DNA of 64,000 nt from Penicillus capitatus (Eukaryota > Plantae > Chlorophyta), in NCBI GenBank assembly GCA_965649825.1, contig OZ287697.1, positions 124,001-188,000 of the forward strand, read 5' to 3'. Below the pieces are notes generated by a model, which ran no database searches, was not told the DNA's origin, and saw only the letters and a program-made list of their open reading frames with translations. A program made the translations under genes and the position numbers. This document shows positions 4,381 through 35,442 of this stretch, in pieces. Position 1 is the first letter of the stretch. Every line of letters begins with the position of its first letter.

Positions 4381-4428
4381 TGCCTGTCCAGATCCAATCG
4401 CCCTGAGAAATCGCCACGTACGACAGCG

Positions 4429-8092: not shown

Positions 8093-8337
8093 TGTTGTCG
8101 TTCATGCCAAGGTTATTGCCCGGCGAACAGTTGACCTTATAGAGCGGAGCGCTCTGAGAACACGACACGTGTTTTGAAAATGCTGAGGTGTGTGCGTTCG
8201 GCTGTCAGATGATACATCACTTCGTCAACAGCAGCTGAGCTGTTCAAGACAGTATTTATAAAATAAATCCTCTGCGTCAGTCGACACGTGAAACGATATG
8301 TGGGTTGCGATTCTCTGTTCGGCATTGGCTGTGTTGA

Positions 8338-8496
8338 TGTCAAGTTTTGCTTTGTAATTGATTGCGTCGGAAACAGAAACCTTGTTACAAAGAACGTAAA
8401 CAAGAAGTTATTAGATAAACGCGCCTGTCCATTTTATGCATGTGATGTGACAGCGATTATGGTTCAATCTTGGCTCAGTAGAATCTTCTCGCGACA
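8338..8496 (-). repeat. 3' LTR of the gypsy element
   Basis: Identical by eye to 12971-13129, with termini TGTC...GACA. Confidence 0.97.
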
Positions 8497-12971: not shown

Positions 12972-13129
12972 GTCAAGTTTTGCTTTGTAATTGATTGCGT
13001 CGGAAACAGAAACCTTGTTACAAAGAACGTAAACAAGAAGTTATTAGATAAACGCGCCTGTCCATTTTATGCATGTGATGTGACAGCGATTATGGTTCAA
13101 TCTTGGCTCAGTAGAATCTTCTCGCGACA
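12971..13129 (-). repeat. 5' LTR of the gypsy element
   Basis: Identical to 8338-8496. Confidence 0.97.
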
Positions 13130-15702
13130 GTTGACGTCGCGCTTTCTGTACAGAAGATGGAAATACGACCTGCACAAGATACCTTGTCCTCCAGGACTGC
13201 CAATCTTAGGCCATACGCTTTCGTTGACGCGGGGCGAGGGACTGAGAGATTCTGCAAAATGGGTGGGGAATGCACTGAAGAGATTTGACTACCCGAAGTT
13301 GATGCGGGTGAGCGATTCCTATATCTTCGTCGCCTTTGGAGAAAACGGTCTAGCTGAACATCATGGGCACGTCGGAACTCATCGTGACGGACGACGCCTT
13401 CGTCAAGACGGTGATCCTTTCCTCACAGAATCCGTTCCCGACAGCAGCAAACGGACATTTCGTACTGCCGGTAAGTAAGCAGATATCCAAAAACTGTCTC
13501 CTATTATCGACTGTTTAGACGATTGGAGACGATGTACAAGCAAAGAGCCTTATGTTGAACGCCAAAGTTACACCATATGTGAAGGCGGTTTGAAGGATCT
13601 ACACAGAAGCCGTGCAGTCGTCGAGTCTTAAGGCAGCAATGCCCAGACTTCAGAACGTCATGCGGAGAATGCTTTCAGTTGTCGAGTCCAAAAGAAAAGA
13701 TCGTCCGGTCGAACTTCAGAAGCTGTTCCTAAGTATGACGATGGATGGAATCGGTGCACTGGCTTTCGATGTCAACATGGGCAGTCTGGATGACAGCAGC
13801 GAGTTCCTGAATCTGCTCAGGGCTGCAGCATACATCGGAAGGCAGAGGTTCTCGAATCCCCTGGGCGAAATCTACTGTCGAATCTTCCCGAACTCATCGA
13901 CGGCTCAGCAACGGCGCGAGACCATAGAGAATCTGAATCGCAAGTGGAAGGAACTGACAGACGACATCTTGCAGAGAGAGGCACCGACCACAGGAGAGAA
14001 CCCCGTCTGGTATGGACTGAAGCGTCTGGTGGATCCCGAAACGAAGAAATCCATTCCCTACAACAGACTTCTCTCAGAAGTCGCCACCGTCGTGTTCGCT
14101 GGGACAGAGACAGCTGGACAACAGCTGGCGTGGGTTATGGCTCTCATCGCATCCCGGCCGGACGTGGCGGAGAAGATTGTCAAAGAGATTAATAATCATG
14201 GGCTCTATGGCGAAAACACACGAGAACTGCAGTTTGAAGACTTGGCCAATCTGACTTACCTGACAGCTGTCATTAAAGAAGGAATGAGAGTGGTCTGGGT
14301 GGCTGCAGCCACCTTTCCTCTCATCCTTCCGGAGGATATGACGATTCTGGGATACAGAGTGCCAAAAGGCACTCAGATCACACGCTTTGGACACAGAGCA
14401 TTTCAGGTCGATACCGACTGGAACGATCCAGATTCATTTGACCCGGAAGGAGAGTTCGCAGACGATGATCTTCGCAACAGGTGCAATGTCATGTTCTCAT
14501 CAGGTCCGAGAGATTGTGTCGGCCAGAAACTGGCCATGCTCGAAATGCGCCTTGCCGTCATCTCTCTCTCTTACAGAAGTATAGACTCTCGCTGGTCGGC
14601 ACCATTCAAGATTTGATGGACAACGTTGTTATGAGTGCGGCTGTTGAAGTGGAGGGCGGCATGTGGATTAGCGTCGTGCAAAGGCAGAATCCTTGAGTCT
14701 TCCAATAGCTCTTCATCAATATTGTTTCATTGATTGAGAAAGAGTATTGATTTTCGGATAGAAATGCTCAACACGCAAAACACATTGTCATGAAGTTGAA
14801 GCGCAGGAAGGGAAGAACGTCGCATCGTTACAAGAAGCATGACGAATCATGACTTTATGCTGAGGGAACATGATAAAAGGGGGTTTTTGGAAACATACAT
14901 TCTTTTCAAAGAAAAGAAACTCTTCATCTCAAACATATGTGTGTTAACATGTTATCAATTTTTCCTTTCTACAAGACTCGCGACTCGTTTGGCGAACGCC
15001 GATGTCGGGATGCGACGAACGCATGTCCATCATCGATCCTCATCGGTCTTCGACGACAAGGACAATTCTCTAGATGCCAACACAGCATCTACTGTGAGTT
15101 CAGTTGGAGACGTCGGGCGCCGAGACGGTGAGCGAAGAGACAGGATGGTTGAAGAACAGTCCGATTAATTGCCTCCATTGAGATCGTCACGCAGAGCGAC
15201 ATGACGTTCTGGACCGAAAGCGAATGCTGGACTGATCGCAGTACCCAGTCAGGTAAACCTTTGGTGTATATCATCGCAATCGTCTCGTTTGTATTTGCAA
15301 TGACTAAGCGAGGTGTTCTGGGTCGCCGAAGCCAGCCGTCTTAAATCTAATGAATTTAAATGCAAGACTTCTAGTAGTCCGTGCTAACAAGAATGCGTTC
15401 AGAATTGTTTTTAGCGTGTTTGATGAGCAAAAAGGTGACAGTGACTATCATCTAAGTCAATCTTCAAATGCTTCCTTCCACCATAAACTAGTCTACATGA
15501 TCGCACCAAAAATTGAAATGAACATTTGCCTGTGCATCAAGTTAACATTGATTAAAGCGATCACTTTAGCTTCCGTCCATTAGATCCCAAATCTAGTTAA
15601 ACAATGGAATTTAGCTTTGCGGCAATGTGTGTGTTAGGCAGTGAGTGTGTAGTGATGGTAAGCAATGACAACGCCCGTGATGCCATCCATCAATCGGCAG
15701 CG

Positions 15703-16556
15703 TCAGAGACCGAAGCCTTCGCAGTAGTTCCAGCATGAATCGAATGCCTTTGCAGCTAAGTCTTGCACAGCTGCGATGAACTCGGCCTCTGTACTCACGG
15801 AGGGCGTATCTGGTGTCCTGCAAATACCATCGTCAGTATTGAGCTTCGCATACACGCTCTTCGCAGCGTCAATCACTGCCACGATGTTCTGTTCGCAAAT
15901 GGAATCGCCAAACGTATTCACTCTCTCGGCAACATCCCGAATAGCTTGGCCGACGAGGCACGAGACTTCGACCGTATTCTGTTTGATCGAACCACAGTAT
16001 ACACCAATGGTGCCCGGAGGACAAACGACCACCAAATTTCCGAGTGTGCTCGTAACGGCTTTGCAAAAGCACTCCGCGTCTTTCATGACGTTAACGTTGC
16101 GGCACTCCGTCTGAGACGGTTGTTGCTTCGTCCTGAAGCACGCATCAGTTGTTTTTGGGAAATCCTGGGCAAAACAGCGTCAGAGATTCACGTTGTTTAC
16201 GTCGGGTTTACACTCGGAGCATAGGACATCGTCGCCGTGCAATTATTGACGCCCTTCTCTATGCTAGACATGCTGCCATAACTTGTCAGCGGAGCTGGCT
16301 CGCCTGCAATGAGATATATGCCCTTGCCTCCACCATTGCTACTAGCGGTAATTCCCCCGTCCTTGTAGATAGTCTTCATATTGTCTGACACTCCGGGTTG
16401 GGCTCGTCGAGCAGCTTTCACGATTTCCAGAGAACACCTTTCCTCATATTGTGCTAAAAACAAACTGCCGTCTCACATATGACACCAGCAAGAATTACCG
16501 TCCGAGACGACGCTCAACAACGCGGTAAGAACAACCATAAGTGTGAGCTTCGACAT
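15703..16556 (-). CDS. Secreted Cys-rich protein of unknown family, copy 1 (3 exons)
   Basis: Signal peptide MSKLTLMVVLTALLSVVSDA|QYEERC. The 45- and 47-nt introns join in phase, and the C-terminus DAECFCKAV...DSCWNYCEGFGL is shared with the 31757-32676 paralog. Confidence 0.8.
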
Positions 16557-17613
16557 TCTAGGAATCCACAGACTAGCGAATTGGAGTGAAAGCTTTTGGC
16601 GAGATTGGAAACCCGACACGGAGAACGGCTTAAAATAGCGGTAAACGTCCAGCCGTTGGGAAGTTGTGCGAAGCTGGGCACGTGTCCAAGATACCCGTCG
16701 TCTCCGACAGTCACTTCATTCAGTGTCAGATCCGTTTATTCAATGCGAATTGCATCTGAAACCGCCACGTCGTTTCATTGCTCGCCGATTCAGAACTCAT
16801 GAAACGTAATCAAAGTCTGAATCTTGTGATGGCTAGATTAAAAAGCAAAACGACTGAGTTCCGACGCTGAATGACGCAGAGGATTCTTGAAAGAACGAAC
16901 TGTCTGGCGTAGGTATCTAGATAAGTTCGAGGCAAAGGTATCAGTAGACTTAACCGATTGCCAGCCTTGTTCTGAAAGAGCAGATCAATCATCCATAAAT
17001 CACATCACTGGTATGCTCAGTTATCTTTGTTCAGTATGGTAATTAAGTTACCTTTTTGTAGACCAGTAGCCACGATCCAGCAAGACAACGCATACTCTCC
17101 CACACAAGACGGTCGTCTTACGTTAAGGCCATACGCTGCGTCCACGCGTCCGTGTTCGATCGCCCAACTTGCAGATGGGAGGGCAACGGCGCATGCATCA
17201 CATCAATCAAAGTTCCGTGTCCTTTCAGGCTCGTCAATGAATTCAACATTTGTTGATCGATTTGCGCTTTCTTTGCGCAAAGTCTTCATGCAGCAAAGAG
17301 TGTCACCAGTCAAGAAACGCAGAAGAAACGATACAAGCCCCTGTGCTTGGCTCTCGTATTCACAACCGAAACGAACCGCCGCAAAGGAGACGGACGGACG
17401 CAGTCTCTTCGACGGTTCGCACATTGCGACTTCGCTGACCTCATCTGCCTTCAGAGAATGTGTCTAACGATTGTAGGAGATGGAGATAATGATGAGGTAT
17501 AAAGACAGCGGTCGACGTTTGGAATCCCATTCTGCCTTGTGAGCAAGAGTCTTGTTGTTTCGCTGCGAAGCCACTGCATCGTCCGTTTCGTCGGGTTATT
17601 CGACGCAAAAGCC

Positions 17614-19220
17614 ATGTGGACTGCCATCCTCTGTTCTCTGCTCGTCGCACTCGTGACGCGTATCTTCTGGCGCAGATGGAAATACGACCTCCACAAGGTA
17701 CCGAGTCCGCCTGGCTGGCCGATTCTGGGGCATACGCTCGACTTCGTCAACGGCGAAGCGCTCAGAAACATAGCCAAATGGACCGGACACGGTCTCAAGC
17801 ACCTCAACTACCCAAAGCTGATGAGGGTTTGATGCACGCTGTCCATGTCGACAGCTCAAAATTTCGCCGTAGGTTGACGTTTTGGGCAAATCTTTGGTGG
17901 TCGTCACAGACGACGAGTTCATACGAAACACTATGTTGTCCACCAAAGATCCCTTTCCGCGAGTCGCTGGAAAGAGGTCACCTGTGCTTCCGGTGAGCTA
18001 AATGCCAAACACGATGGGATCAAATGATTTTGTGCTTGCAGATGATAGGAAACAATCCAGAAGCAAAATCATTCTTTCTGCATGCTGAGCCGACGCCATA
18101 CGTCAAGGCCGTTCGCCGGATTTACTCCACAGCGTTTCAAACGAACAATTTAAAAGGGTCGATGCCGAAAATCCACAGCGTTATGGGAAAGATGATCTCC
18201 ATCGTCGAGTCTAGAAGAAAAGACGGACCGGTCGAGGTCCAGAAAATGCTCGTCTCTACGACGTTGGACATCATTGGTTCTATCGCATTCGAGATGAATC
18301 TGGGAAATTTGGACAATGATGGAGGAATGCTCGATATCATGTTGGAGACAGCAGCCGTCGCAAGAGAAGCTTTCAGCAATCCACTCAAGACTGTCTACTG
18401 TAAGCACTTTCCGAACTCAGAGGCGGCACGATACACAAGCTCGGTTTTCGAGAAGATGAACAACAAGTGGAAAGAGCTCACAGATGAGATACTGGCCAGA
18501 GACGACCCAGTCAACGGCGAAGAGCCCATCTGGTACGGACTGAAACACCTGAAAGATCCAGAAACAGAGAAGCGCATGGACTACGACGTCCTTCTGGCCG
18601 AAGTGGCGTCTGTAGTGATTTCCGGTACGGACTCCACTGGCCATCAACTAGCATGGATCATTGGTATCTTGGCAAGTCGTCCCGATATCGTTGAAAAGAT
18701 CGTGGACGAATTGAAGCAGTACGGTTTGTACGGAGACACTCAGAAAGAACTGCAGTTTGAAGACTTGTCGAACCTGACCTATCTCAATGCTGTCGTTAGG
18801 GAGGGTATAAGAGTAGCACACGTTTTCCCAGGAAACGCCGTTCGAAGTGTGCCAAGGGACATGAGTATTCTCGGATACAGAATCCCGAAGGGGACGACGA
18901 TTCTGCAAATTGGCAACCGCGCGTACCAAATCGACGCAGACTGGAACGATCCAGAAAGCTTCAAGCCAGAGAGGTGGCTCGATGACGATGCGATCTGCCG
19001 TTCACATAACCTGCAGTTCTCTACTGGCCCCAGAGATTGCCCCGGACAGAGACTTGCAATGCTGGAAATGCGAGTTGCTATTGCGACTATCCTTCAAAGA
19101 TATGAGATCTCCTTGGTCGGATCTTGTGCAGACATAATGAACAATACTGTGACGAGGCTTACCGTCGAAGCTGTGAAAGGGATCTGGATAAACTTTGCGC
19201 CTAGAAAGACTTCTGCTTAG
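17614..19220 (+). CDS. Cytochrome P450 (type B copy 1), intact, 3 exons
   Basis: N-terminal anchor plus PxPPGWP hinge, I-helix SGTDST, ExxR (EGIR), KPERW and heme motif FSTGPRDCPG. Confidence 0.95.
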
Positions 19221-20341
19221 CGCAGATGAGATTCTTATTCATGGTTCTATGTGACAGAGTCTTTTCCTATCTCGTTTTCTTGTTTGTGGGAACCGATTAT
19301 TTAACACCGAAGTAGTGTGAGGTCTGGCTATTCTTTACACCTGCAATGTATGTTATATGGACAGTCACTCTTCGTTGAGATTCCTTTGTAATGGCAGTGA
19401 AGGTTGATGTTAATGTATGCATCTCTCATAATCGTCTTGACGTCGTTTTGCCGTACGTTGTTGTCTTACTTATACCTCAACAAATGACGTCCATCACGGG
19501 CGTCGTGATGATACGGTGCGTACCTTTTTAGCCGGCTATCTCGTTCACGATGTCTCTTGCCCCGGCAGGGTGTCGTGAAGAGATGAATCCAAGTACTGGT
19601 GTACGCGTCGACAGCCAGCGTCGCCAGTGGCATGTGGACCGGCGTGAATCTAAGTGCAACAGGTCTGTTGGTTGCGAATGATGGAAACAAAGACTTGCCG
19701 GATGATGACAACGATGCAAGAGGAATGCAAGTCATTGATGTAATCGCGTCAAGGTCGTTTGGGAGTCCCAGAATAGCAAACAGCTCCTTACAATTCGTCA
19801 ATCGGAACTTCGTGATCAAACTGTGGAGGACTGACTCCGTGTCAATGAAGATGACAGAAGATGAGTAAGAAACAAATAAAAGATCGACATAACCGCGCTT
19901 CTTGTAGGATGTGTCCAGTCTGAGATCGTTCGATTGCCAGAAAAGCGAATCGCTCGTGATTGGAAGAAGTTAGGTTGTCGCGCTATGCAAAGAGTTCTCG
20001 GCCTTTGTGTGATTTGAAACTACAACGGCAGGAGGGATCGGAGATTTTGGGATTGATGTAAACAACTTCGAAAGCACAGAGTCGAACTCACATGCGACGA
20101 CGATGCAAACGAACGCTCAGACGATGTGAAACCCGACTGGCGTAGGGACCTAATGGGGGGTGAAAAGGAGACACGACTGTCGGCGATCAAATAAATGAGG
20201 GAAGCCGAACAGTCGGATCATCATTTTTCTGTTCTTTTACCTTTGTCCGACGTTCCCGATTGTAACGAATCGTTCTGGGCGTCGAAGCGCGTGCAAGCTC
20301 CGTTATGGGCCCGAGACGGCGTTTAACAGACGTTAGCACAA

Positions 20342-20570
20342 GAACTCGAGGATGTTTACAACAGGAATGTCAGTCTTAAGTACCCACGGTGGTTATGAAT
20401 TCCAAACCATAACATTCAACAGTCGAGAACTTCTAAGTTATCTTCAAAAACCATCGCCCTATTGTTATGAGGAAGTTGGCTCAAAGGTTAGCACCTGTCG
20501 CAGCCGATGGTCAGCGCGCCGAGGTGGTTACCATGACATTGAACCGCTTCCGACGGCTACGAACAACGGA
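20342..20570. repeat. ~230-bp non-coding segment duplicated at ~44840-45062
   Basis: Shared blocks such as ACAACAGGAATGTCA, AAACCATCGCCCTATTGTTAT and GAACCGCTTCCGACGGCTACGAACAA. Both copies lie downstream of type B P450s. Confidence 0.8.
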
Positions 20571-21686
20571 TTTTTTTCCGTTTGATTGGATTTACATCTC
20601 CCTTTGACAAGATCGGGAGAGCATCAACACATGACAAGATCAAATTCGTTGTGTTGCAACATCAGCGGCCCCATTTGCAGCCAGTAGTGCGCCAGTGAGA
20701 TGCAATTGATTCTACAAAGTCTGATAGAGCCATTGGGTGCGAGAAAGCGCATGCAACCGATAGCGAGGCATCGAGTTTTCGGGTGAAGAGTCTTCGGGCT
20801 TCAAACAGGCGGAGGTATTCAAGAAGTAGATGGTCCGGGTCTTCTGATTCCGAGCCGCAACCGCAGCGGGAGTCCCCTGCCCCTAGGCTAAATCTACGAA
20901 GATTTTTGGATTTTACATGGCGTCACTTAACAAGTATATGCCATGTCCCTCAGCAGAGAAGAAAGGGACAGCTATATATCTGTTCTCACTGCAAGAACTT
21001 CCCACAGCGCAAACTCTGCATAACCGTTGTGGGCTGAGCCGAGTGGAAAAAAGGGGGTCCATCCCGACTCGAGGTTAGAATAGCTCGGGGCCGTGCTTCG
21101 TCTGTCTTTGTCAATTCGTGCACTTCCAGCTCTCCGCAGCAAACACGTCGTCCACACTCCAGACCACAGCGCCAACCATGCACGCCTCGGATCTGACCGT
21201 TGCCCACCTTCTCGAGAACGCGCGGTCCACTTTCGTCAGTCGTAACCCAGAGAACCGTCGGAGAACCTCCGTCCAAAAGCGCCGCCACCGGCAAGGGCAA
21301 ACAGGAAGTCGACGACATTAACGAGCCATTAAAACCTCGGCTAAATTTATGAAGGTACCGGTTTAACGGGGAATGATTCGCCGCGAACCGACTCAAGCGG
21401 GATGACGGATCTCGGTCTAGGTGTTTCGCCGGGAAGTTGCCTCGGTTCTCCTGATCTTTTAAAAAAGGAGTTGTAAAAGCCCTTAAACAAAAAAAGTTGC
21501 CTCGGCTAAATTCTAGTAGATGTTGTGTGAGATGACTACTGGCTTCTCTATCTTGAATGTCCTTGAGGGAGCAGGTGTTAAGATATCGTGTAATTTTTTT
21601 TTCTGAACCAGATTCGAGCGGGGGTGGCCGTGTGGCGTCTTGTGTCCGTGTGCTGCTGCCATCTTCGCGCAGTTCTTCTCAACCAT

Positions 21687-21818
21687 TGTCAGTGGACAGC
21701 TGTCCACCTTCGTGCAGCTGTCCAAAGGATTATATAAATTCTTACAATTATTGTACAAACAGTCTTTGTAAGCCATACGCCTTCGTCGTCAACCCGTTGT
21801 CCGTCAACGAACACGACA
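21687..21818 (+). mobile_element. Solo LTR related to the TRIM LTR
   Basis: TGTCAGTGGACAGCTGTCCACCTTCGTGCAGCTG...GCCTTCGTCGTCAAC...GACA, flanked by CCAT on both sides. Confidence 0.8.
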
Positions 21819-21849
21819 CCATGAAGGGGCTGAGGCATGGGTTCCAATC

Positions 21850-22990
21850 CGTTTTGGTCCAGAACAGGTAAATGGCTTGAGTTCAGCCAGTCAAGCAGGA
21901 GACACTGGATTCTGACGTTGTCCGCTTGTACATTGTGCCATTTCAGTGCCGCGTGTTTCGTTCTAAGCGAGTCTACGCAAATGCCGAGTGTCTGCGGGTA
22001 CATGGGGGGCGCAGAACTCGTGAGGTCGAGGAGCGTTTCAATGCCATTGCAGAGACAGTGGAGAAACGACTCTGTAGCGTCTACCCAGTTTACCTCCCAC
22101 TAGGTTTCTCCTTGGCGAGCTTCTTTCTGAAGGAGGCCCCAGCTCGTTCCCAATCTTCCGGACTGGTAATCTTTGTGAGTGGCTACAGACAGTAGCCAAG
22201 ATGGCCTGTGCATGCCCGAGGTGAATGTCGAGCCTGATAAGCGGCCCAGCTGATGCGGCGGGATCGGTCTCCAAAGTATGGTCGATTGAGGGCTGATTGC
22301 CATGGGTCTGTGGTGAACCGAGCGCAGCCAGCGTGACCAGGCGTTTCTGCGAAGGCCCTGGCCTGAAGGAAGTTTTGGTCGTTCCGCAAACAGCCTGTCT
22401 CCAGTTTCTTTAGTTCTTCTTCGGAGGTCTAAGTAGAGCGTTTGTTGAATGATCTGCTGTGTAGGGGGCGGACTCCCGCGAGGGCATATGCCGTTGGATA
22501 CGATGAGGTCCGGAAGGAGCCGCTTAGAAGAAGGCAGGCTTGTCGGAGCGCTTTCTCCAGTAGGGCCAGTTTCTGTTTGTCGTAGGCTACCGGTTGCCAG
22601 ACCTCCGCGCCGTAGTATGCTGCCGGCTCGATCACTCTGCCGACCAGTTTCTCAATGGCTTCCGGGAGCAGACCCCAGAAGGGGCTTGCCATTCTGCGAA
22701 TGAGTGCCAGTCCGGAGAGGACTTTGCCTGCGGCACTCTGCACCTGTGGGATCCATGAAAAGGTTTTCGTCCAGCCAAATTCCAAGATAAAGCACAGCGT
22801 GCTTCTGGGGCAGCTGGTGTCCCTGAATGTAAAGCGTCCGGGGGTCGGTACGTCTTTTGTTGCGGGCGACTCGAATTTGTAGGCATTTCTCGGGGGCAAA
22901 GATGAGGCCACGTTCTTGAGCCCATTCTGGCATAATGTCGAGTGCTCTCTACGAACAACGAATTGGGCGCTACATATCTAACAGAGATAG
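21850..22990 (-). mobile_element. 5'-truncated, frameshifted LINE fragment (C-terminal RT region)
   Basis: WAQERGLIFAPEK...YLGIWLD...WGL...IEPAAYYGAEVW...LLSGSFRTS...AGVRPL, typical of the RT thumb region of I/R1/Tad-like LINEs, with stops and frameshifts. Confidence 0.85.
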
Positions 22991-23715
22991 AGTTGCCAAG
23001 TCAAGAAAGATAATTCTGAGCTGGAAGATGTACTGCGAGGAACTGATGTATTGCAAAGCTTGGGGTTGGGTTGTTCACGAGTAGTCTTGAACCGCGGTCG
23101 CCAATCAGAGAAGTGTTACTTTCCAGCCGAGGTGCTTGAGAGATTCGCCTCGATCGCCGTTTTGTCACTGTTTTTCGGCTTTCAACGCATGGCGAATACA
23201 CCTTTGTCTTCACGCCTGTTCTGCTAGTACGGGATTTCTTCACATCAGTAATGCATCGTCCACATTCTGTCGTGTCTGATAGTAGGGGTGGCTTTTGTTG
23301 CGGATCTGTTTTGCATGGAAAAGGGCTAAAGCTGTGAGGTGCGTGCGATACGAGGGCGAGTGATTGGAATATGCACTTCGTGATCAACGACACTGTATGA
23401 GTAACCGAGGTCCACGTTACTGGGTCAGAAGAGTGTGCGTATGCACTGGAAACTTGCCAGTTTCGAGTAAGGCGGTTGACTCAATTGATGTAAAGCGTTG
23501 CCTCACCGGCGACACAATCAAAAAGCTCTTGGTTCGTAAGAAGTCGCACTCTATGTGTCCAGGTGTGGTTAGTATAAAATCATTGAACGTCATTATTTGC
23601 AGATTGTGTCAGTTTTGGGATTTCCGTTTTGCTGTGTGAACAAGAGTCTTGTTTTCTGGTTGAGAGGCCGCATTGTCCACTTCGAGTTTCGACGTGGCAT
23701 TCGACGTGGAAAGCC

Positions 23716-25317
23716 ATGTGGACTGCCGTCCTCTGTTCTCTGCTCGTCGCAATCGTGACGCGTGTCCTCTGGCGCAGATGGAGGTACGACCTCCACAAAG
23801 TACCGACGCCGCCTGGCTGGCCAATTCTGGGCCACACCCTCGACTTCGTCAACGGCGAAGCACTCAGAAACACCTCGAAATGGTTTGGACAAGGTCTCAA
23901 GCGCCTCAATTACCCGAAGCTGATGCGGGTGAGATGTTCTGCATACATGACAGCTACATAAGAAGTCGCTGTAGATTAATGTTTTTGGCAAATATTTGCT
24001 AGTGGCCACGGATGACGAGTTCATAAAAAGTTGTATGATGTCCAATAGACATCCCTTTCCTAGAACCGTTGAAAACGAAAGTTTCATTCTTCCGGTGAGC
24101 TCATTTACAGATGGGCCCAAATGATCATGTGTTTACAGATGATAGGCAACAATCCACAAGCGAGATCACTTTTTCTGCATGCTGAAGCAACGCCATACGT
24201 CAAGGCCGTTCGCAGAGTTTACCTAAACGCGTTTCAGTCGAACAATCTGAAGATGGCGCTGCCGAAGATTCAAGACGTCATACGAAAGATGATCTCCGTC
24301 ATCGAATCTGCGAGGGAGGATGGACCGATCGACGTCCAGAAACTGTCCGTATCGGTGACCCTGGACGTCATTGGTTCTATTGCCTTCGACAAGAATCTGG
24401 GCGGTTTGGATGGCCCTGGAGAGATCATCGACCACATCTTGGCAGCTGGATATGTCGCGAGAGAAGCTTATAGCAATCCACTCAAGTCAGTCTACTGTAA
24501 GATCTTTCCACACTCTAAGGCTGGAAAACACCGAAGCTCAGTTCTCGGCAACCTGTACAAAGAGTGGAAACGGCTCGGTGATGAGATACTGGCCCGAGAC
24601 GACCCTGTCAATGGTGAAGAGCCCATCTGGTACGGGCTGAAACATCTGACAGATCCGGAAACGAAGAAACGCGTGGACCACGACGTTCTTTTGGCTGAAG
24701 TTGCGACTGTATTTTTTGGCGGGATGGGCGTTACGGGCCATCAACTCGCATGGATCTATGGTCTATTGGCCTCTCGTCCAGACGTCATCAAAAAGGTCTT
24801 GGACGAGCTGAAAGAGCACGGCCTGTACGGAGACACTCTGAACGATATGCAGTTCGAAGACTTGTCGAAGCTGACCTATCTCAATGCTGTCGTTAAGGAG
24901 GGCATGAGGGTGGCGTGCGTTCTTGTACAAATATTTGGTCGGAGTGTGCCAAGAGACATGAACATTCTCGGATACAGGATCCCGAAGGGGACGACGATTC
25001 TGCAGATTGGCAACCGCGCGTACCAAATCGACGCAGACTGGAACGATCCAGAAAGCTTCAAGCCAGAGAGGTGGCTCAGTGATGACGCGATCTGCCGTTC
25101 ACGCAACGTACAGTTCTCGACAGGCCCAAGAGATTGCCCTGGGCAGAAGTTGGCAATGCTGGAAATGCGAGTTGCCATTGTCGCCATCCTTCAACGTTAT
25201 GAGATCTCATTGGTCGGATCGTATGCAGATTTGGCAGACAATGCGGTGACAGGACTAGCCATCGAAGCTGAGAACGGCATCTGGTTGAATTTTGCGCCGA
25301 GAAAGACTTCCACTTAA
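23716..25317 (+). CDS. Cytochrome P450 (type B copy 2), intact, atypical I-helix
   Basis: Same 3-exon structure, I-helix FFGGMGVTG, EGMR, KPERW and FSTGPRDCPG. Confidence 0.94.
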
Positions 25318-26199
25318 CAGGGCAGAAGTTTTTCATCATCCATCGATCTTCACTTTTAGAATTACATCACTTTCTTTTGCATGAGGATACTGAATGCCAA
25401 GCGCAAGAGAAGTGTGATTCATGACTATTCTTTTCACTTGCAATGTATGTTAGAAGGATTTTCACTCTCCGTTGAAACTCATCTGTAATGCAATGCAGGT
25501 TGACTTTATACATCTCTCTCGGCATTATCCGTCGTTACTTCACTGCGCGGCATAATCTCACTGGTCATCTGACCCTCACTCGGATGCATGATATCCATTA
25601 CGGAAAAACGCGATTGCGCGAGATGCGGGTCATTTCAATCCATTTGCGCACACACCTGTCACCAATGCGACCTTTCTTCGGAGACTATCTGATAGAAGAC
25701 TGTTTGTCATTGGGAGCTGTACATTTGATCGGGACTTTCATTTTTATTCGCTTTACCGACCGCATGCTTCGGTCGCAACGAAAACGTGAGGAAATGCAAA
25801 TCAATCCCAGAGGGCTTGACAAAGTCAAAAAACGCTTCCCGTGGAGAGAGATGTCGGCTAAAGGATTATCGCTAGAAAGTTAAGAAACAAAGAAAAGGAT
25901 GCTGCTAGATACGTTAGGATGCGAGACGTGACGGGGATGCGTTGGACACCGTGTGCCGCGGGCGTGCACACGCGGAAAGACAAATAGAGGGAGCGAGCAG
26001 TGTTGAGTCGATGCAAAGACTACTTACACGGTGCGTCCAGTCAGTTAAATACCCGTGGCGCCCGCGGACCGCTGTCCCATCAAGAAGCTGACAGCCTGTC
26101 CGGTCCGCGGGGCCAAACCGTTGTCGACCTCCCGTCAAGACGCCGTATCGCAAATCCATAGGCGAAACGAACGAAGAGTTCAAACGGGATCAAACTCTG

Positions 26200-26650
26200 C
26201 AGCTATGGCAAACGTCTGCCGATGGGATTAACGGCACCCCTTGTGTGCATGCAGTAGATGTGATCGCACGATTGATGGCCACAACTGAATCTTAATTGGT
26301 GTGGATCTTGTCCGCTATCGCATGTCACCCTCATATCGCCGAGAAAAGTGAAATAACTCAAGGAGCACGAACTCTACGGAAGACTCCCTATGACTTGCAG
26401 TTTCAAGACTTATCATGTTTTACGTACCTCACAGCCATCATCAAGGAGGGAATGCGCGTTGCACATACGGACTGTGCTTCGTTTACATGCCGGGGCATCG
26501 AGAGACATCACATTTCTCGGTATACAGAGTGCCAAAGGGAATTCGCATCTTTTACGTTGGCAATAAATCATTCTAGATCGTTAGGGAGTGGGACGAGTCA
26601 GAAAGTTCCAAGCCTGAGAGATGGTCGGTCGGTGTCTCATTCAATGTGGG
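26200..26650 (+). pseudogene. Decayed P450 fragment
   Basis: LQFQDLSCFTYLTAIIKEGMRVAH, then GYRVPKG and KPERW in shifted frames. No intact heme motif. Confidence 0.8.
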
Positions 26651-26904
26651 GTTTTTACATGGGCTCCGCACAGTGGTATATCACATAGTTCTTGATAAGT
26701 TCAGTAAGGCATCGATAGATTTATGAAAGCTTTTTCGAGATGCAAGAAAGGCATCTATCTAGTCGGGACAGATAATTCAGTGCTAGCGATGGAGGAAAAG
26801 TTTTAGCAAATAATTGCCACTTGCTTCGGTTCGACTCTAGGTGTGGATAGCAAAGATGGTCCCTGGTCTCTTCCATATTTGGCATCTAAAACGATATTGG
26901 TTTG

Positions 26905-27854
26905 TGTCAGTGAACAGCTGTCCACCTTCGTGCAGCTGACGACGGAGACGCGTTTGTGAGAGTCGACCTGTCGGCCGAGTCCGAACCGGATGGCGAGTCG
27001 CGCTGGGAGCTCCGTCAGCAATGTCTAATTACATAACTCGACGGATAAGACAGAACAGTTCTCGCATAAGTACTCGGAATGACGTCAGTCCTCTCTCATG
27101 CCAACGTCGTGCATGATGAGCGTCTTGCGCAACGTACGTCACAGCGTTGATGTGACGTTCGACGCGTATATAAGCCGTATTGTTAACGATTCAACAGTCT
27201 TCTGTAAGCTATAAGCCTTCGTCGTCAACCGACAACGCGACATGGTTTCGGAGCTGCAAAGATTCCGGCGATAGAATCCCGTCATCGAAGACTGAAGACT
27301 TTCCCAGACACGTCCGTGGTGACAGCGTTTCACCTGTCACTTGCAGTCTGGAGTTCGTTTCATCGTCCGAGTTGCTGAGTTTCAGTTTCACGCTGCGATA
27401 GCGTGCTGTTGTGCATTTGTCGTTGTTTGCGTTCACCGTTGCTGCGCTTTGTCTGTGTTTTCGTTTCATATCTGAGTCACCACGGACGTGTTGTCGCTGT
27501 GAGAGTTGGTTCGTACTTCCCGTGTCAGTGCCGAAGTATCAGAGACGTAAGAGCCACAGAGCTGCGGTGAGCGGGCCGCAGAGGGAGAAGCCGTGGGAGC
27601 GCGATGGCCCATGGCTCGACTCCTGGCCAGCCTGATGATGTCCCGGTCGTTGCGAGATGCGTTCCTTTCACGCCATTCGGAGCCTGCACAGCGGAAAGGG
27701 GGTGGGCACATGTCAGTGAACAGCTGTCCACCTTCGTGCAGCTGACGACGGAGACGCGTTGATGTGACGTTCGACGCGTATATAAGCCGTATTGTTAACG
27801 ATTCAACAGTCTTCTGTAAGCTATAAGCCTTCGTCGTCAACCGACAACGCGACA
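26905..27854 (+). mobile_element. TRIM (non-autonomous miniature LTR retrotransposon)
   Basis: 144-bp identical LTRs TGTCAG...CGCGACA (the 5' copy is split by an insertion), TSD GTTTG (26900-26904 and 27855-27859), PBS TGGTTTCGGAGC at 27243-27254, purine tract GGAAAGGGGGTGGG before the 3' LTR, and 468 bp of internal sequence without pol. Confidence 0.92.
26955..27143. mobile_element. Solo LTR nested in the TRIM 5' LTR
   Basis: 189 bp with TGTGA...TCACA termini and TSD GCGTT (26950-26954 and 27144-27148). The empty site is visible in the TRIM 3' LTR. Confidence 0.88.
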
Positions 27855-28654
27855 GTTTGTAATTCACGTTTCCAAGCATTAAAAAAGGGCGAGGTAAATG
27901 ACGGATGGGCCTTAACGGTTTCAGCCAGCGGGCTAGACACGCCGCTGGCTTCCGATGTGACAGCGTCCGCGTCACCGAGGGGTATAAAGCCGACGTGTAC
28001 GCTCACCCTGCAGTCCTTGCATTGACTAAGGTGTTGTTCCTCCTTCCTCGTGACGCGTGTGCGCGTCAGCGGCGTAAATTTCTCTGACGTTCCCTGTCAG
28101 TAGTCCCTTGTCGGCAGATGTCCGGCCAGAAAGCGATTAGGTTGCTTTTCGCTTGTTCTAGAGAAGTGTTTCCACCAGGTTTATTCCATGTCCATCCAAT
28201 TTGCTTGAGTGCTTGGCTTTTGAGGTCAACATGCCACAGGTCACAAGCGATGGTGCCGAGGTATGCTTTCCGTGCTGTCTGAACGAGTTCGCTGCAAATT
28301 TCTGACTCGGTATGTTCGAGGATGAGTTGTTGAACGCCCAACAGTATCCATTCTTGGGCGGCTACTTTTTTATTCCTTTCGCTCTCTATGCATCTGAGTT
28401 TGATATGTGTTTTTAATCGGATTTGTTGACCGGGACGTATTCCATGGGAAGTGGCAGTTGAGGAGTAAGCCTAGGATGTTGATTTCTGAAGAACGAAGGC
28501 CAACCAGTGAGATGTGAGAGCAGGTGAGGGTTATGCGATTAGCTCCAGTGATCAGGATGCCTCCAAACCGGTAGAGTGAGCGGAGAATTTGTATCGAGCC
28601 TTGAGGATTTTCCTCGTGAGAGAAGTCCAAAGATGGAGACGTTGCACAAAAAGA

Positions 28655-29287
28655 CTGGTACGTGCACACATGTAAAGGATTATTTGGTGGATACTTGATT
28701 TGTGTCATTTGAGGTGGAATCGTTGGTTTCCAAAGTGCGCCGGAATTCTGTCTCATCTCCGAGTTTCTTCTTCTGACTTCTGACTATAGTTTGGGCAGAG
28801 ATCTATCGTTTAAACGGACCAATTAAAAATGCAATGAATTCTGATTCCCATCGTCGATGCTAAACGCAGTGAATACAGCTGATTCGCCTCAGCGCCAGGC
28901 AAAACTTCTCAAGGAACCCAGGGACCTGCACAGTTCCCTGCCGCTGCGCCTCATTGCTTTCATGTCATTGCACTTCGTTCAACTCTTTCGTCTCCAGAAA
29001 AAAACGAGGCAGAACAATGCCAAGCCCTCAAGCATTAGAAGCATACCTGTTGTACATTGTGCTGGGACAATGAGGTCTTCATAGACGAGCATTAGGCGCG
29101 TGATCCGGCAGCGATGGACGCCGCTCTCGTCTGTTATAAACGTTCCACCGGCACCGCAGAATTTGCTCGTTCGTGGGATATACGGTTAATCGTCAGCAGC
29201 GTATGGTTAACCGTTATTAAGATTCGTTTCTGCGCGTGTTCCTTCACTGAGGACAGCCACTATTAGTACTGGACATCGCAGAAGGAA
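28655..29287. repeat. Upstream/promoter region of type A P450 duplicated at 47614-48246
   Basis: Long near-identical stretches, e.g. GATTCCCATCGTCGATGCTAAACGCAGTGAATACAGCTG. Confidence 0.9.
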
Positions 29288-30887
29288 ATGTGGACGGCAT
29301 TGCTTTGGTCGCTCGTCGCCGTATGGCTTTCACGCTTTCTGTGGAGAAGATGGAAATACGACCTGCACAAGATACCTTGTCCTCCCGGACTGCCAATTTT
29401 GGGCCATACGCTTTCCTTGACGCGCGGCGAGGGACTGAGAGATTGCGCAAGATGGGTGGGTAATGCGCTCAAGAGACTTGACTACCCGAAGTTGATGCGG
29501 GTGAGCAATTCTCGAACTCGAGTCGCATTTAAAGAGAACGGTTTCAGTTGGACGTCATGGGCACGTCGGAACTCATCGTGACGGACGACGCCTTCGTCAA
29601 AACGGTGATCCTTTCCTCTCAGAATCCGTTTCCGATAGGAGCAAACGGACATTTCATACTGCCGGTAAGTAAGCAGCTGTCCAAAAACTGTCTCCTATTA
29701 TCGACTGTTTAGACGATTGGAAATGATGCACAAGCTAAGAGCCTTATGTTGAATGCCGAAGTCACGCCATATGTGAAGGCGGTTCGTAGGATCTACACAG
29801 AAGCTGTGCAGTCGACGAGTCTTAAGGCAGCAATGCCCAGACTTCAGAACGTCATGCGGAGAATGCTTTCCGTCGTCGAGTCCAGAAGAATAGATCGTCC
29901 GGTCGAACTCCAGAAGCTCTTCATGAGTATGGCGCTAGATGGAATCGGTGCGCTGGCTTTCGATGTAAACATGGGCAGTCTGGATGACAGCAGCGAGTTA
30001 CTGGATCTACTCAGGGCTGCAGCATACATCGGAAGGCAGAGGTTCTCGAATCCCCTGGGCGAAATCTACTGTCGAATCTTCCCGAACTCATCGACGGCTC
30101 AGCAACGGCGCAAGACCATAGAGAATCTGAATCGAAAGTGGAAGGAACTGACAGACGACATCTCGCAGAGAGAGGAACCGACCACAGGAGAGAACCCCGT
30201 CTGGTATGGACTGAAGCGTCTGGTGGATCCCGAAACGAAGAAACCCATTCCCTACAACAGACTTCTCTCAGAAGTCGCCACCGTCGTGTTCGCTGGGACA
30301 GAGACAACTGGACAACAGCTGTCGTGGGTTCTGGCTCTCATCGCATCCCGATCCGACGTGGCGGAAAAGATTGTCAAAGAGCTGGACAAACATGGGCTCT
30401 ATGGCGAAAACGCACGAGAACTGCAGTTTGAAGACTTGGCCAATCTGACTTACCTGACAGCCGTCATTAAGGAAGGAATGAGAGCGGCCTGGATTGGTGT
30501 AGCCTCATTTCCTCGCATCGTTCCAGAGGTATGACGATTCTGGGATACAGGGTGCCAAAAGGCACCAAGATCACACGATTTGGACACAGAGCATTTCAGG
30601 TCGATACCGACTGGAACGACCCAAATTCATTTGATCCAGAAGGAGAGTTCGCAGACGATGATCTTCGCAACAGGTGCAATGTCATGTTCTCATCCGGTCC
30701 GAGAGATTGTGTTGGCCAGAAGCTGGCCATGCTCGAAATGCGCCTTGCCGTCATCTCTCTCTTGCAGAAGTATAGACTCTCGCTGGTCGGCACCATTCAA
30801 GATTTGATGGACAACGTTCTCACAAGCGGAACCATTGGAGTGGAGGGCGGTATGTGGATCAACGTGGTGCAAAAGGAGAATCTTTGA
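29288..30887 (+). pseudogene. Cytochrome P450 (type A copy 2) with a 1-nt frameshift
   Basis: CCAGAGGTATGACG at ~30525 versus CCAGAAGATATGACG / CCGGAGGATATGACG in paralogs. The rest of the frame is intact, including FSSGPRDCVG. An assembly error is possible. Confidence 0.85.
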
Positions 30888-31756
30888 GTTTTACAGCATC
30901 ATCTCCAGATTCCAATAACTGGAGAAGCAAGCATTATTTCATTGATCGAGGAAGGGAAATGATTTTCGGAAAGAAATGCTCGAAACGCAAACCACATGTT
31001 CATTATTTTTTTTTCTTTCTACAAGGCTCGCGACTCGTTTGGAGAACACCGATGTCGGGACGTAACAAACGCATGTCCATGATCGATCCTCATCGGTTTT
31101 CGACGACAAGGACAATTCTCCAGATGCCACCACAGCATCTACTGTGAGTTTTGTCGGAGCCGTCGGCGGCGTGACGGTGACGGTGTTCGAAAAGACAGGA
31201 CGGTTGAAAAACGGTCCGATTGATTGCCTCCGTTGAGATGGTCAAGCGGAGCGACATGACATTCTGAACCGAAAGCGAATGCTGGACTGATCGCAGTACC
31301 CAGTCAGGTAAATCTTTGGTGCATATCATCGCAATCGTCTCGTTTGTATTTGCAATGACTAAGCGAGGTGTTCTGGGTCGCCGAAGCCAGCCGTCTTGAA
31401 TCTAATGAATTTAAATGCAGGACTTCTAGTAGTCCGTGCTAACAAGAATGCGTTCAGAATTGTTTGCAGCATATAAGATGCGTAAAAGGAGGTTATAACT
31501 ATCATTCAGATCCTGTCTCAGATACTTCCCATCTATCGTCGACCACCCGACATGATCGTACCAAAATTAAGATGAACATTTCCCTGTACATCAAGTTAGA
31601 TATGTCCAAAACGATCATTTCAGCTTCCGTCCATTGAATCCCAAATCTAGTTAAACAGTAGAATTTAGCTTTGCGGCAATGTGTGTGTTAGGCAGTGAGT
31701 GTGTAGTGATGGTAAGCAATGACAACGCCCGTGATGCCATCCGTCAATCGGCAGCG

Positions 31757-32676
31757 TCAGAGACCGAAGCCTTCGCAGTACTTCCAGCATGAATCGAATG
31801 CCTTTGCAGCTAAGTCTTGCACAGCTGCGATGAACTCGGCCTCTGTACTTGCGGAGGGCGTATCTAGTGTCGTACTAGTACCAGTAGTACTAAGCTTCTC
31901 ATACACGCTTTTCGCAGCGTCAATCACTGCCACGATGTTCTGTTCGCAAATGGAATCGCCAAATGTATTCACTTTCTCGGCAACATCCCGAATCGCTTGG
32001 CCGACGATGCAAGAGACTTCGACCGGACTGAGTGAAATCGAACCGGAAACTGGGCCACTCATCAATATTTTGTCGACCTGGCAAGCGACTCTATCCGCAA
32101 GCTGTTCTTTCGAATCGCAAGATTCATGATTCGAAGTACAGTCTATTGAAACGGAGCCGAGTGTACTCGTGACAGCTTTGCAAAAGCACTCTGCGTCCTT
32201 CTGAACATAAAAGTCGCGGCACTCTGTCGGCGACGGTTGTTGGTTCGTTCTAAAGCAAGCATCCGCTATCTTGCGGAAATCCTAAACAAATCACCGTCAG
32301 AACTTCGCGTTCAACAATTGTGGTTTACGCGCGGAAAAAGGGTTGTCGTCGTGGAGCATCCGCCTCTAACCGATGTAGAGTTTATGGACTTGCGTTGCAT
32401 GAGCGGAATTGGCTCGCCATTCGAGTTCACCGGATGCCCGCCGCTCTTCGAATAAGCAGTAGAGTGAAAACCCCGTTCGCTAAAAGTAGTGCTGCTCCCT
32501 GATAACTTTCCGGTTCTCGACAGTAGATCAGCAGCTACGACTTCGGACGAACACTTTTCCTCGTATTGCGCTAAAAACACAGTGTCGTCGTCTAGCAGGT
32601 GACAAAGACGAGTTTTACCGTCCGAGACGACGCTCAACAACGCGGTGAGCACAACCACAAGTGCCAGCTTCGACAT
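31757..32676 (-). CDS. Secreted Cys-rich protein of unknown family, copy 2
   Basis: MSKLALVVVLTALLSVVSDA|QYEEKC, with the same two intron positions as copy 1 and the conserved C-terminus DSCWKYCEGFGL. Confidence 0.8.
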
Positions 32677-33841
32677 TCTTGGAATCCACAGACCGGCGAA
32701 TTGAAGTGAAAGCTTTTGGCGAAATTAGAAACCCGACACGGAGAACGGCTTTTAAAGCGGCGAATAGTCAGCCGTCGGGAAGTTGTGCGAAGCTGGGCAC
32801 GTGTCCAAGATACCCGTCGTTCTCAACAGTCACTTCAGCGTTAAGTGCGTTTCTTCAATGCGAAGTGCATCCGAAACCGCCACGTCGTTTCATTGATCGC
32901 CGATTCCGAACTCATGAAAGTCAATCGAAGTCTGAACTAGTGATGGCTAGGCTAAGAAGCAAAACGACCTAGTTCCGACGCTGAATGACGCAGAGGATTC
33001 TTGAAAGAACGAACTGTCTGGCGTAGGTATCTAGACAAGTTCGCGGCAGAGGTGTCAGCAGACAGAGCCGATTGCCGGATCCGTTCTGAAAGAACAGATC
33101 AATCATCCATAAATCACATCACTGGTACGTTTAGTTGTCTGTGTTCAGCGGGGTGATTGAGTTACCTCTTTGTGGACGAGTAGTCACGACCAGGAAGATA
33201 ATGCGTGTTCTACCACATGAGATGGGCGTCCCAGATCATGATCATACTCAGTCCTGGCATTTGTATTAAGTAGAGCGACTTGCACATCGGACTGCACAGG
33301 CGCTCGCAGAAAATGACATCTGCCGTTGAATGTGTTCGAGAGAACGGACCGCTTAAGGTCTAAAATCGGTGTCTTCGGAAGGACATTAGGAAGCAAAAGA
33401 CACTGGCGCATGCATCGTTCCGATTGTTCGCAGATGGTGTCGCCGCATCGGGGACGCTTGGACGTCAGAGATAAACTGGTCTTTACACTGGCGTCAGAAA
33501 CCCACACACGTTCCTCGGGACACCTTTACGGCGTTTCTGCGCCATCGAGGTTACACATCCGAAGCGACGTATCATTCGGATAGATTTGACTCCCAAACGC
33601 GATCCATCGACCTGTTGCGCCGATGGACCTCACAGACGTCGTCCTTCGTTCCATGAATTCGTCTGACGATCGTAAGAGATGGAGATGACAGTAGAGGAAG
33701 GAGTCAGCATTAGTCACTTGGGTTTTCGTTCTGCTGCGTGGATTATATTTGGATTCTCGTTTTGCCGTGAAAACGAGGCTCCTGCCGTGTGGAGCTGCGC
33801 TGTCCGTTTTCAGTTTCGCCGGGCCATTCGACGTGAAAGCC

Positions 33842-35442
33842 ATGTGGACTGCCGTCCTCTGTTCTCTGCTCGTCGCACTCGTGACGCGTATTCTCTGGCG
33901 CAGATGGAGGTATGACCTCCACAAGGTACCGAGTCCACCTGGTTGGCCGATTCTGGGGCATACACTCGACTTCGTCAGCGGCGAAGCGCTCAGAAACACA
34001 TCGAAATGGTTTGGACGAGGTCTCAAGTGCCTCGATTACCCGAAGCTGATGAAAGTTTAATGCTCACTGTCCTTGTCAGCTGCTCAAAATTTTGCTGTAG
34101 ATTGATGTTTTTGGTAAATCTATGGTGGTGGTCACGGACAACGAGTTCATAAAAAACGTTATAATGTCCAGCAGAGATCCCTTTCCTAGAACCGTCGAAA
34201 ACGACAATTTCACTCTTCCAGTGAGCTTATTGACAGATGAGATCAAGTGATTTGTGCTTGTAGATGATAGGCAATAATCCACAAGCCAGATCACTTTTGC
34301 TGCGTGCTAAAACGACGCCATACGTCAAGGCGGCTCGTAAAGTTTACTTAACCGCGTTTCAGTCGAACAATCTGAAGATGGCGCTGCCGAAGATCAACGA
34401 TGTCATGAAGAACATGATCTCGATCATCGAATCTGCGAGGGAGGATGGACCGATCGACGTCCAGAAACTGTCCGTATCGGTGACCCTGGACGTCATTGGT
34501 TCTATTGCCTTCGACAAGAATCTGGGCGGTTTGGATGGCCGTGGAGAGATCATCGACCACATCTTGGCAGCTGGATATGTCGCGAGAGAAGCTCATAACA
34601 ATCCACTCAAGACTGTATACTGTTAGCTTTTTCCATACTCTAAGGCTGGACGATACCGGAGCTCGGTTCTCGGCAACCTGCACAACGAGTGGAAAAAGCT
34701 TACGGACGAGATACTGGCGCGAGAGGACCCTGTCAACGGAGAAGAGCCCATCTGGTACGGACTGAAACATCTGACAGATCCAGAAACGAAGAAACGCGTG
34801 GACTACGACGTCCTTCTGGCCGAGGTTGCAACAGTTGTGTTTAGCGGGATGGACACTACAGGTCATCAACTCGCATGGATCCTTGGTCTCTTGGCTGCTC
34901 GCCCCGACGTCGTCGGAAAGATCTTAGACGAGTTGAAGCAGCACGGTATGTACGGAGACACTCAGAAGGACCTGCAGTTCGAAGACCTGTCGCAGCTGAC
35001 CTATCTCAATGCTGTGGTTAAGGAAGGAATAAGAGTGGCGTACGTTTTAGTGCAAATCTTTGCTCGAAGTGCACCAAGAGACATGAACATTCTCGGATAC
35101 AGGATCCCGAAGGGGACAACGCTTCTGCAAATTGGCAACCGTGCGTACCAAATCGACACAGACTGGAACGATCCGGAAAGCTTCAAGCCAGAGAGGTGGC
35201 TCAACGACGATGCGATCTGCCGTTTACATAACCTACATTTCTCTTATGGCCCCAGAGATTGTCCCGGACAGAAGTTGGCGATGCTGGAAATACGAATTGC
35301 CATTATCGCTGTCTTCCAAAAGTACGAGGTCTCCTTGGTGGGATCGTATGCAGATTTAGCAAACAATGCGGTGGCCGGACTAGCCATCGAAGCTGAGAAC
35401 GGCCTCTGGTTGAATTTTGCGCCTAGAAAGACTTCCACTTAG
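33842..35442 (+). pseudogene. Cytochrome P450 (type B copy 3) with a single premature stop
   Basis: TAG at 34624-34626 where paralogs have AAG (Lys). Otherwise intact: SGMDTT, EGIR, KPERW, FSYGPRDCPG. Confidence 0.87.

Follow-up and report, generated by a model that had tools for sequence, protein, structure and literature searches.

The window analysed here, a 64,000-nucleotide stretch of the Penicillus capitatus contig OZ287697.1 (positions 124,001 to 188,000), carries two copies, A and B, of a gene for a cysteine-rich and probably secreted protein within an array of P450 genes. Both lie on the minus strand where the original prediction placed them, and both are intact three-exon genes with GT-AG introns of 45-48 nt (Table 1). 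Exon 1 encodes a typical signal peptide, MSKL(T/A)L(M/V)VVLTALLSVVSD. Exon 2 opens with AQYEE(R/K)C and closes just past a second Cys, and exon 3 adds 11 Cys, giving a total of 13 in A and 13 in B. Splicing of A is required because its intron 1, if retained, brings an in-frame stop. Intron 1 of B (32571-32618) is 48 nt long, in frame and stop-free, and results in a read-through open reading frame (ORF) of 121 aa (32311-32676).

Further copies come from ENA assembly ERZ25074695, in which a 25 kb contig is base-for-base identical to window 13257-38455. The other haplotype of the whole region, 98-99.8% identical, is found on a 1.46 Mb contig of this assembly and gives the alleles A' (L007) and B' (L006) as well as a third unit with paralog C (L003), located about 50 kb from B. 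On a 945 kb contig (L004) paralog D lies in tandem with E-H, four members that are more distant, and no P450 is near. In all, at least eight paralogs are present in the same metagenome-assembled heterozygous eukaryote, and all share the three-exon plan. A YAG-like acceptor motif lies one base 5' of the ATG of A and B (CTAG and CAAG, at 16558-16562 and 32678-32682) and also precedes that of C (CAGG) but not that of D; it may be an acceptor for trans-splicing or a chance occurrence.

The open frames are intact in six copies (A, A', B, B', C and D), with like exon plan and intron phases. The first third of exon 3 (its first 48 codons, here exon 3a) has a ratio of nonsynonymous to synonymous change (omega) of 0.14-0.22 by maximum likelihood (ML; p < 1e-5). 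On these two sequence criteria the family genes are functional, and A and B were rejected as pseudogenes. We also rejected an antisense ORF in exon 3 as a real gene, since the purifying selection matches the minus-strand frame, and the idea that the two exon 2s are non-homologous, since they share length, phase, the anchors AQYEE[RK]C and GEPxPL, and Cys positions.

Table 1. Positions in the window of the two Cys-rich genes, their parts and flanks, and the P450 genes that adjoin them
Feature	Position	Strand	Description
Gene A	15703-16556	-	exons 16556-16499, 16453-16212, 16164-15703; 253 aa
A exon 1	16499..16556	-	ATG and signal peptide, 58 nt, ends in phase 1
A exon 2	16212..16453	-	242 nt; AQYEERC, variable loop, second Cys
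A hypervariable core	16242..16433	-	codons 27-90, between Cys26 and Cys91
A exon 3	15703..16164	-	462 nt including stop; conserved domain, 11 Cys, predicted helical
5' flank of A	16557..17117	.	homologous to 32677-33230; 85% identity; shared with divergent P450 17626-19211
3' flank of A	14959..15702	.	homologous to 31009-31756
Polymorphic conversion tract, 3' flank of A	15074..15424	.	91.5% to paralog B versus 87.3% to own allele A'
Gene B	31757-32676	-	exons 32676-32619, 32570-32329, 32281-31757; 274 aa
B exon 1	32619..32676	-	signal peptide
B exon 2	32329..32570	-	242 nt
B hypervariable core	32359..32550	-	codons 27-90
B exon 3	31757..32281	-	525 nt including stop
B-specific insert	32060..32125	-	22 codons, carries Cys155 and Cys167
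5' flank of B	32677..33230	.	near-identical to that of paralog C
3' flank of B	31009..31756	.	near-identical to that of paralog C
Type-1 P450, co-duplicated with A	13131..14698	+	partner 29300-30889; third copy 48259-49849
Type-2 P450, divergent from A	17626..19211	+	partner 33851-35433 adjoining B

Segments of different silent divergence in one gene pair

A and B lie within a segmental duplication (13137-17117 versus 29330-33230; blastn E = 0), so their similarity is far above chance, and it is distributed much as had been described from the sequence. Identity is 86-94% in the flanks and 48% in exon 2. The signal peptides agree at 17/19 residues, and the 480 nt upstream align closely (414/474 identical). 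The last 200 nt of coding sequence (183/197 identical) and the first 150 nt of the 3' flank (141/150) are close to the near-identity that had been claimed, although "a handful of differences" was slightly generous; those in the coding part are concentrated in NTDDGICRTP versus STTGTSTTL. Exon 2 is indeed barely alignable between its two Cys, with 15/63 residues and, over the exon, 115/239 nt identical, and forms a trough of 38-51% identity in sliding windows. The described exon-3 indel and its two Cys are real; the net gain that this implied is not. B has no equivalents of A Cys157 and Cys215, which are conserved in every other family member, and gains Cys155 and Cys167, so that a Cys pair has been swapped and the total stays at 13.

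From the contrast between exon 2 and the promoter and 3'UTR, the original prediction had concluded that selection acts on exon 2. The silent sites do not bear this out. Between A and B, Nei-Gojobori counts give 25.6 synonymous differences at 46.2 sites in the exon-2 core, 20.5 at 32.3 sites in exon-3 codons 101-150, and only 6 at 57.2 sites in codons 169-253 (Fisher p = 4e-7 for the last two). ML estimates of synonymous divergence (dS) are 0.90 for the exon-2 core, 1.2 for exon 3a and 0.08 for the last third of exon 3 (exon 3c). Exon 3a is a conserved part of the protein, with 34/48 residues the same in A and B and an A-B omega of 0.14 (p = 3e-6, ML). Even so, dS there is about 1.2-1.7, as opposed to 0.08-0.11 in exon 3c. 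Overall divergence (K) between A and B is 0.88 in exon 2, 0.45-0.48 in the two introns and 0.14-0.20 in the flanks. Silent divergence in the exon-2 core and exon 3a is thus 5-10 times that of the flanks or exon 3c and differs significantly between adjacent segments of one gene, as gene conversion is expected to leave it. As a block, the stretch that begins at intron 1 and reaches the middle of exon 3 is old, its conserved-protein part included, and both ends are young. Since silent sites are old in conserved exon 3a too, selection on amino acids cannot make this pattern. The original prediction had named equally diverged silent sites in exon 2, together with conversion tracts in the flanks, as the result that would speak against it, and this is what was found.

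Paralog C provides the second line of evidence, being itself a mosaic of B-like flanks around an A-like core. Informative sites grouping B and C against A outnumber those grouping A and C against B by 95 to 12 in the 5' flank and by 79 to 7 in the 3' flank, whereas from exon 2 to the end of exon 3 the counts are 59 and 120. The nearest relative accordingly switches in clusters among the three paralogs: the A/B/C site patterns fall into 200 runs against 278 expected, and none of 20,000 permutations gave a number as low. In the 5' flank, K is 0.20 between A and B but 0.05 between B and C.

The third line is allelic. No difference separates A and A' in the 747 nt that comprise the 5' flank, exon 1 and intron 1; in exon 3a they differ at eight positions, at seven of which A' has the B state. 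In the 3' flank of A, the allele A' is more distant than paralog B over one tract (15074-15424). Conversion is thus still ongoing, being visible as a haplotype-polymorphic tract. The type-1 P450 beside A looks like another such tract: its alleles (window 13130-14698 and L007 5110-6677) are 92.3% identical (7.7% diverged), compared to 99.5% and 98.1% identity in the sequence on either side.

The gene pair is a mosaic with conversion tracts, and its parts contrast sharply in rate. We favour, with a probability of about 0.72, the reading that A and B are old paralogs whose ends were reset by interlocus gene conversion and whose exon-2 loop evolves fast. The two genes would be old copies, with a silent divergence of about 1, inside a tandem unit of P450, Cys-rich gene and P450. 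In the array, interlocus gene conversion or unequal exchange may have repeatedly overwritten three parts (promoter plus exon 1, the final third of exon 3, and the 3' flank), and the old divergence would be retained between them, starting at intron 1 and reaching the middle of exon 3. In the exon-2 core, a 64-residue loop between conserved Cys, amino-acid change would proceed at or above the silent rate, with the rest of the protein under purifying selection. The loop may be exposed and either tolerant of change or diversified, and what now blocks conversion there may be its divergence, mechanically, or selection.

The exon-2 loop and competing explanations

Selection on exon 2 was assessed in its core (codons 27-90), where only 63 codons are compared. 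The Nei-Gojobori method (NG86) gives an omega of 1.0-1.5 between paralogs and 2.4 between the A alleles, with no pair significant by itself. With the Goldman-Yang codon model, ML estimates are 1.6-2.7 between paralogs and 3.75, not significantly above 1, between A and A'. A tree of four sequences gives an omega of 2.13 (likelihood-ratio test (LRT) against omega = 1, p = 0.012), A, A' and C give 2.67 (p = 0.0135), and A, B and C give 1.89 (p = 0.044); p in the multi-sequence tests ranges over 0.012-0.045 and is 0.28 for the A-B pair alone. In a parametric bootstrap at omega = 1, 4/537 replicates reach the observed LRT with omega above 1. The estimates are stable under equal, F1x4 and F3x4 codon frequencies and, because the A-C alignment is essentially ungapped, do not depend on doubtful alignment. 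The A alleles differ at 13 of the 242 nt of exon 2, compared to 0/747 nt upstream, with 10.5 nonsynonymous and 1.5 synonymous differences; B and B' are identical in exon 2. The support for an omega above 1 is nominal, since the core is short and the estimate could be raised by multinucleotide changes or by conversion from donors not sampled. Multinucleotide mutations have this effect (bioRxiv 10.1101/165969), and one of the A allelic changes comprises four adjacent bases (16385-16382). Comparing rates by exon with introns and flanks, as had been proposed, gives a divided answer: omega in exon 2 is above 1, and dS there is as high as in exon 3a. Of the predicted diversifying selection, the codon-based signal stands with moderate, not robust, support from these few sequences; the flank contrast is due to conversion, and a neutral linker is a live alternative.

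This alternative, to which we give slightly less than even odds, accepts the conversion mosaic and takes the loop as an unconstrained, disordered and possibly glycosylated linker, with the excess of omega an artefact of multinucleotide changes, small sample or unsampled donors. It is favoured by the NG86 values, none of them significant, by the A-B pair on its own, by the four-base allelic change, and by a loop of about 44-52% S/T/G/N/P in which structure models have no confident fold. It is opposed by the ML tests, which reject omega = 1 under three frequency models and in the bootstrap, and by the loop itself, which is not free of constraint: it keeps its length (242, 242 and 239 nt of exon 2), frame, GEPxPL motif and both Cys. 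The opposite view is that the loop is a true target of diversifying selection, an exposed and possibly glycosylated segment on an undescribed, disulfide-rich helical scaffold that is kept different between paralogs, and between A alleles, while conversion homogenises its surroundings, as in a system of recognition, defence or effector type. We regard this as a tentative possibility, somewhat behind the linker.

A different history would begin with a recent segmental duplication, after which ectopic conversion replaced one core with that of a more distant, unsampled paralog; the parts taken as old and young would then change places. Further members of the family exist elsewhere, C about 50 kb from B and D-H on another contig, and conversion is demonstrably active. 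Yet word-index and exhaustive searches gave only A, B, C and D types in this assembly, none near A or B in exon 2, and the flank identities form a graded series (92, 89, 85 and 80%), which suggests several events of different ages. We consider this history unlikely.

Several points weigh against the old-paralog reading that we prefer. Conversion explains the similarity of the flanks and not an exon 2 in which amino acids change faster than silent sites. Exon-2 K exceeds intron K, the direction expected of positive selection, although the introns are only 45-48 nt long and partly constrained by splicing. The replacement of a core from an unsampled paralog after recent duplication would give the same picture. 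The sequences compared are those of the window and one metagenome assembly. No transcripts of A or B themselves were found, and an extracellular matrix- or surface-associated role would be guessed only from amino-acid composition and the tails of some paralogs.

The model of the original prediction, a recent duplication of the age of the flanks followed by diversifying selection on exon 2, is very improbable. It would account for an exon-2 omega above 1 (1.6-3.75 by ML and 1.0-2.4 by NG86 when alleles are included), for allelic differences of A that are concentrated in exon 2 and mostly nonsynonymous, and for an exon 2 more diverged than its introns. As a sole cause it is contradicted by the heterogeneity of silent sites. 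Amino-acid selection cannot saturate synonymous sites, and these are highly diverged in exon 3a, where residues are kept; divergence in the introns is 2-3 times that in the flanks; and paralog C and the haplotype patches change their nearest relative by segment. Finally, chimeric assembly between paralogs or haplotypes, or decay of pseudogenes, might be suspected from a metagenome assembly and genes for which no transcripts were found, but is negligible given that an independent contig record reproduces window 13257-38455 exactly, paralogs differ by > 5% along most of their length, frames and splice sites are kept in six copies with exon 3 under purifying selection, and the distant homologue P0058 occurs in two SRA runs, on contigs of ~1 kb that lack introns and have UTR-like ends.

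The protein family and its genomic neighbourhood

An exhaustive HMMER search of 1.84 billion representatives with a profile of A and B exon 3 returned only ORFs of this genome and P0058 (242 aa, 26% identity), and a word search by profile contributed no more than paralogs B', C and D. Two loci from a JGI metagenome scan by C-terminal alignment were rejected as chance matches to a CWxYCEG pattern in a stop-filled frame. Ten Cys are invariant across nine sequences, five L004 paralogs and P0058 among them, and two more are missing only in B; by this signature the copies are a true family. The joint loss of two Cys in B and the gain of two in its insert suggest that A Cys157 and Cys215 form one disulfide and that the Cys pair of the insert forms its own.

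Exon 2 is a short four-Cys module in distant members, whereas in A-D it comprises two Cys and a loop of 52-64 residues. Residues S, T, G, N or P make up 44-52% of this loop, and those of A, B and C have one or two N-glycosylation sequons. Some paralogs have Ser/Pro-rich, PSP-repeat or acidic tails, H ending in a long PSP/SPTPSPAPA repeat.

The family had not been recognised in the original prediction, and fairly so, since no curated family or solved structure matches. The Pfam field was empty for the exon-3 ORFs of A, C and D, the ORF of B exons 1-2 and full-length P0058; NCBIfam gave nothing relevant; and against PDB sequences the best E of the family profile was 0.88. AlphaFold2 models are of low confidence, with a pLDDT of 36 from single sequence and 42 from a 7-row alignment, the latter with four or five ~20-residue helices in exon 3 and no confident fold in the loop. 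The best Foldseek match of such a model in the PDB (E 0.19, TM about 0.2) is noise. The proteins would form a lineage-restricted, secreted and disulfide-rich family and are probably mostly helical.

The unit repeated in the array consists of a type-1 P450, the Cys-rich gene on the opposite strand, and a type-2 P450. Between 13131 and 62167 the array has about ten P450 loci of two subtypes, each with 1-2 introns (~45-50 nt), as well as a fragment (26275-26663). The 1.46 Mb contig has many further P450 copies, and so does a contig of 4.08 Mb; the 56 matches listed for the P450s are ENA, JGI and Logan contigs. A functional link of the Cys-rich genes with the P450s was rejected, as paralogs D-H on L004 have no adjoining P450; there, five members form a tandem cluster in the order G, D, E, H, F (4504-18853). 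The genome has ~49% GC, few introns per gene (~45-65 nt) and two haplotypes 0.2-2% apart.

Other features of the window include a Ty3/gypsy long terminal repeat (LTR) retrotransposon at 8338-13129, with matches to reverse transcriptase, RNase H and integrase, identical LTRs of 159 bp (8338-8496 and 12971-13129) and a 5-bp target-site duplication, GTTGA. The other haplotype has the empty site. As the element sits in the coding region of the N-terminal membrane anchor of the type-1 P450 adjoining A, this P450 allele is probably knocked out. The gene at 3304-4716 (minus strand) encodes a FabF-type 3-oxoacyl-ACP synthase II with an N-terminal extension resembling an organelle-targeting peptide; its top PDB matches are bacterial (E 4e-80), well above the plant and human mitochondrial enzymes. 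Exact direct repeats (100%) lie by the P450 fragment (26905-26954 = 27711-27760 and 27144-27242 = 27756-27854). A diverged inverted duplication (36411-37032 versus 37048-37646, 74-76% identity) is possibly a transposon, and the other haplotype has ~1.9 kb extra at about 37390 (L005 4170-6074). No rRNA, tRNA or other Rfam matches were found in the window.

Comparison with known systems

Ectopic gene conversion between duplicates has been described from duplicated blocks in Drosophila (PMC2588116) and from human segmental duplications, where interlocus conversion also creates segregating variants (PMC4467073). A, B and C resemble these systems in their patchy identity, in silent divergence that differs several-fold between adjacent segments, in the switching of nearest relatives among three paralogs and in haplotype-polymorphic tracts. 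They differ in that a short exon-2 loop is spared from homogenisation in all three array copies and has an omega above 1.

The mode of evolution is also reminiscent of MgCRP-I of mussels, secreted Cys-rich proteins in which the signal or pre-region is conserved and the mature region, built on an invariant Cys framework, is hypervariable (PMC4558851), and of cone-snail toxin superfamilies. Shared features are a conserved signal exon and Cys framework, a hypervariable segment, tandem copies and an omega at or above 1. The pattern holds here in the signal peptide (17/19 residues), the core (15/63) and the ten Cys invariant in nine sequences. An excess of nonsynonymous over synonymous change, expected of this mode, appears in the ML estimates (1.6-2.7, p 0.012-0.045 in multi-sequence sets), to which multinucleotide changes and conversion may contribute, and is not significant in NG86 pairs, and the excess of exon-2 K over intron K (0.88 versus 0.45-0.48) goes with an exon-2 dS (0.9) similar to that of exon 3a (1.2). 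Unlike MgCRP-I and conotoxins, the family proteins are ~235-255 residues long without signal peptide and have 12-14 Cys; exon 3, most of the mature protein, is conserved and only the loop varies; there is no relation in sequence or motif; and conservation of the flanks is largely a matter of conversion, not constraint.

Gene A invites a third comparison, to genes of the major histocompatibility complex, where conversion or recombination homogenises introns and flanks and one exon is diverse under balancing selection. Like these, A has its allelic differences in the diverse exon and homogenised surroundings; unlike them, gene B has alleles identical in exon 2. As for the fold, nsLTP proteins with their 8-Cys motif, elicitins and the four-helix bundles of PMEI and invertase inhibitors are helical, disulfide-rich secreted proteins of plants and oomycetes and serve as leads only. 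They share with the family a signal peptide, Ala-rich predicted helices of ~20 residues, disulfides and optional Ser/Pro-rich tails. The family differs in having no Pfam or PDB match, in Cys number and spacing, and in a model pLDDT of 42.

In conclusion, we have described an orphan family that evolves in a known way. Conversion can reset flanks and so create a contrast between coding and flanking sequence; in tandem arrays, a coding sequence that has diverged more than its promoter and UTR does not alone testify to selection. The genes add an undescribed, lineage-restricted and probably secreted family with ten invariant Cys, a three-exon plan, a loop with an omega of ~2 and one swapped Cys pair. 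Should the selection signal be true, the loop would become a candidate determinant of recognition in a eukaryote of which little is known; should it be false, the loop would be an ordinary fast-evolving linker.

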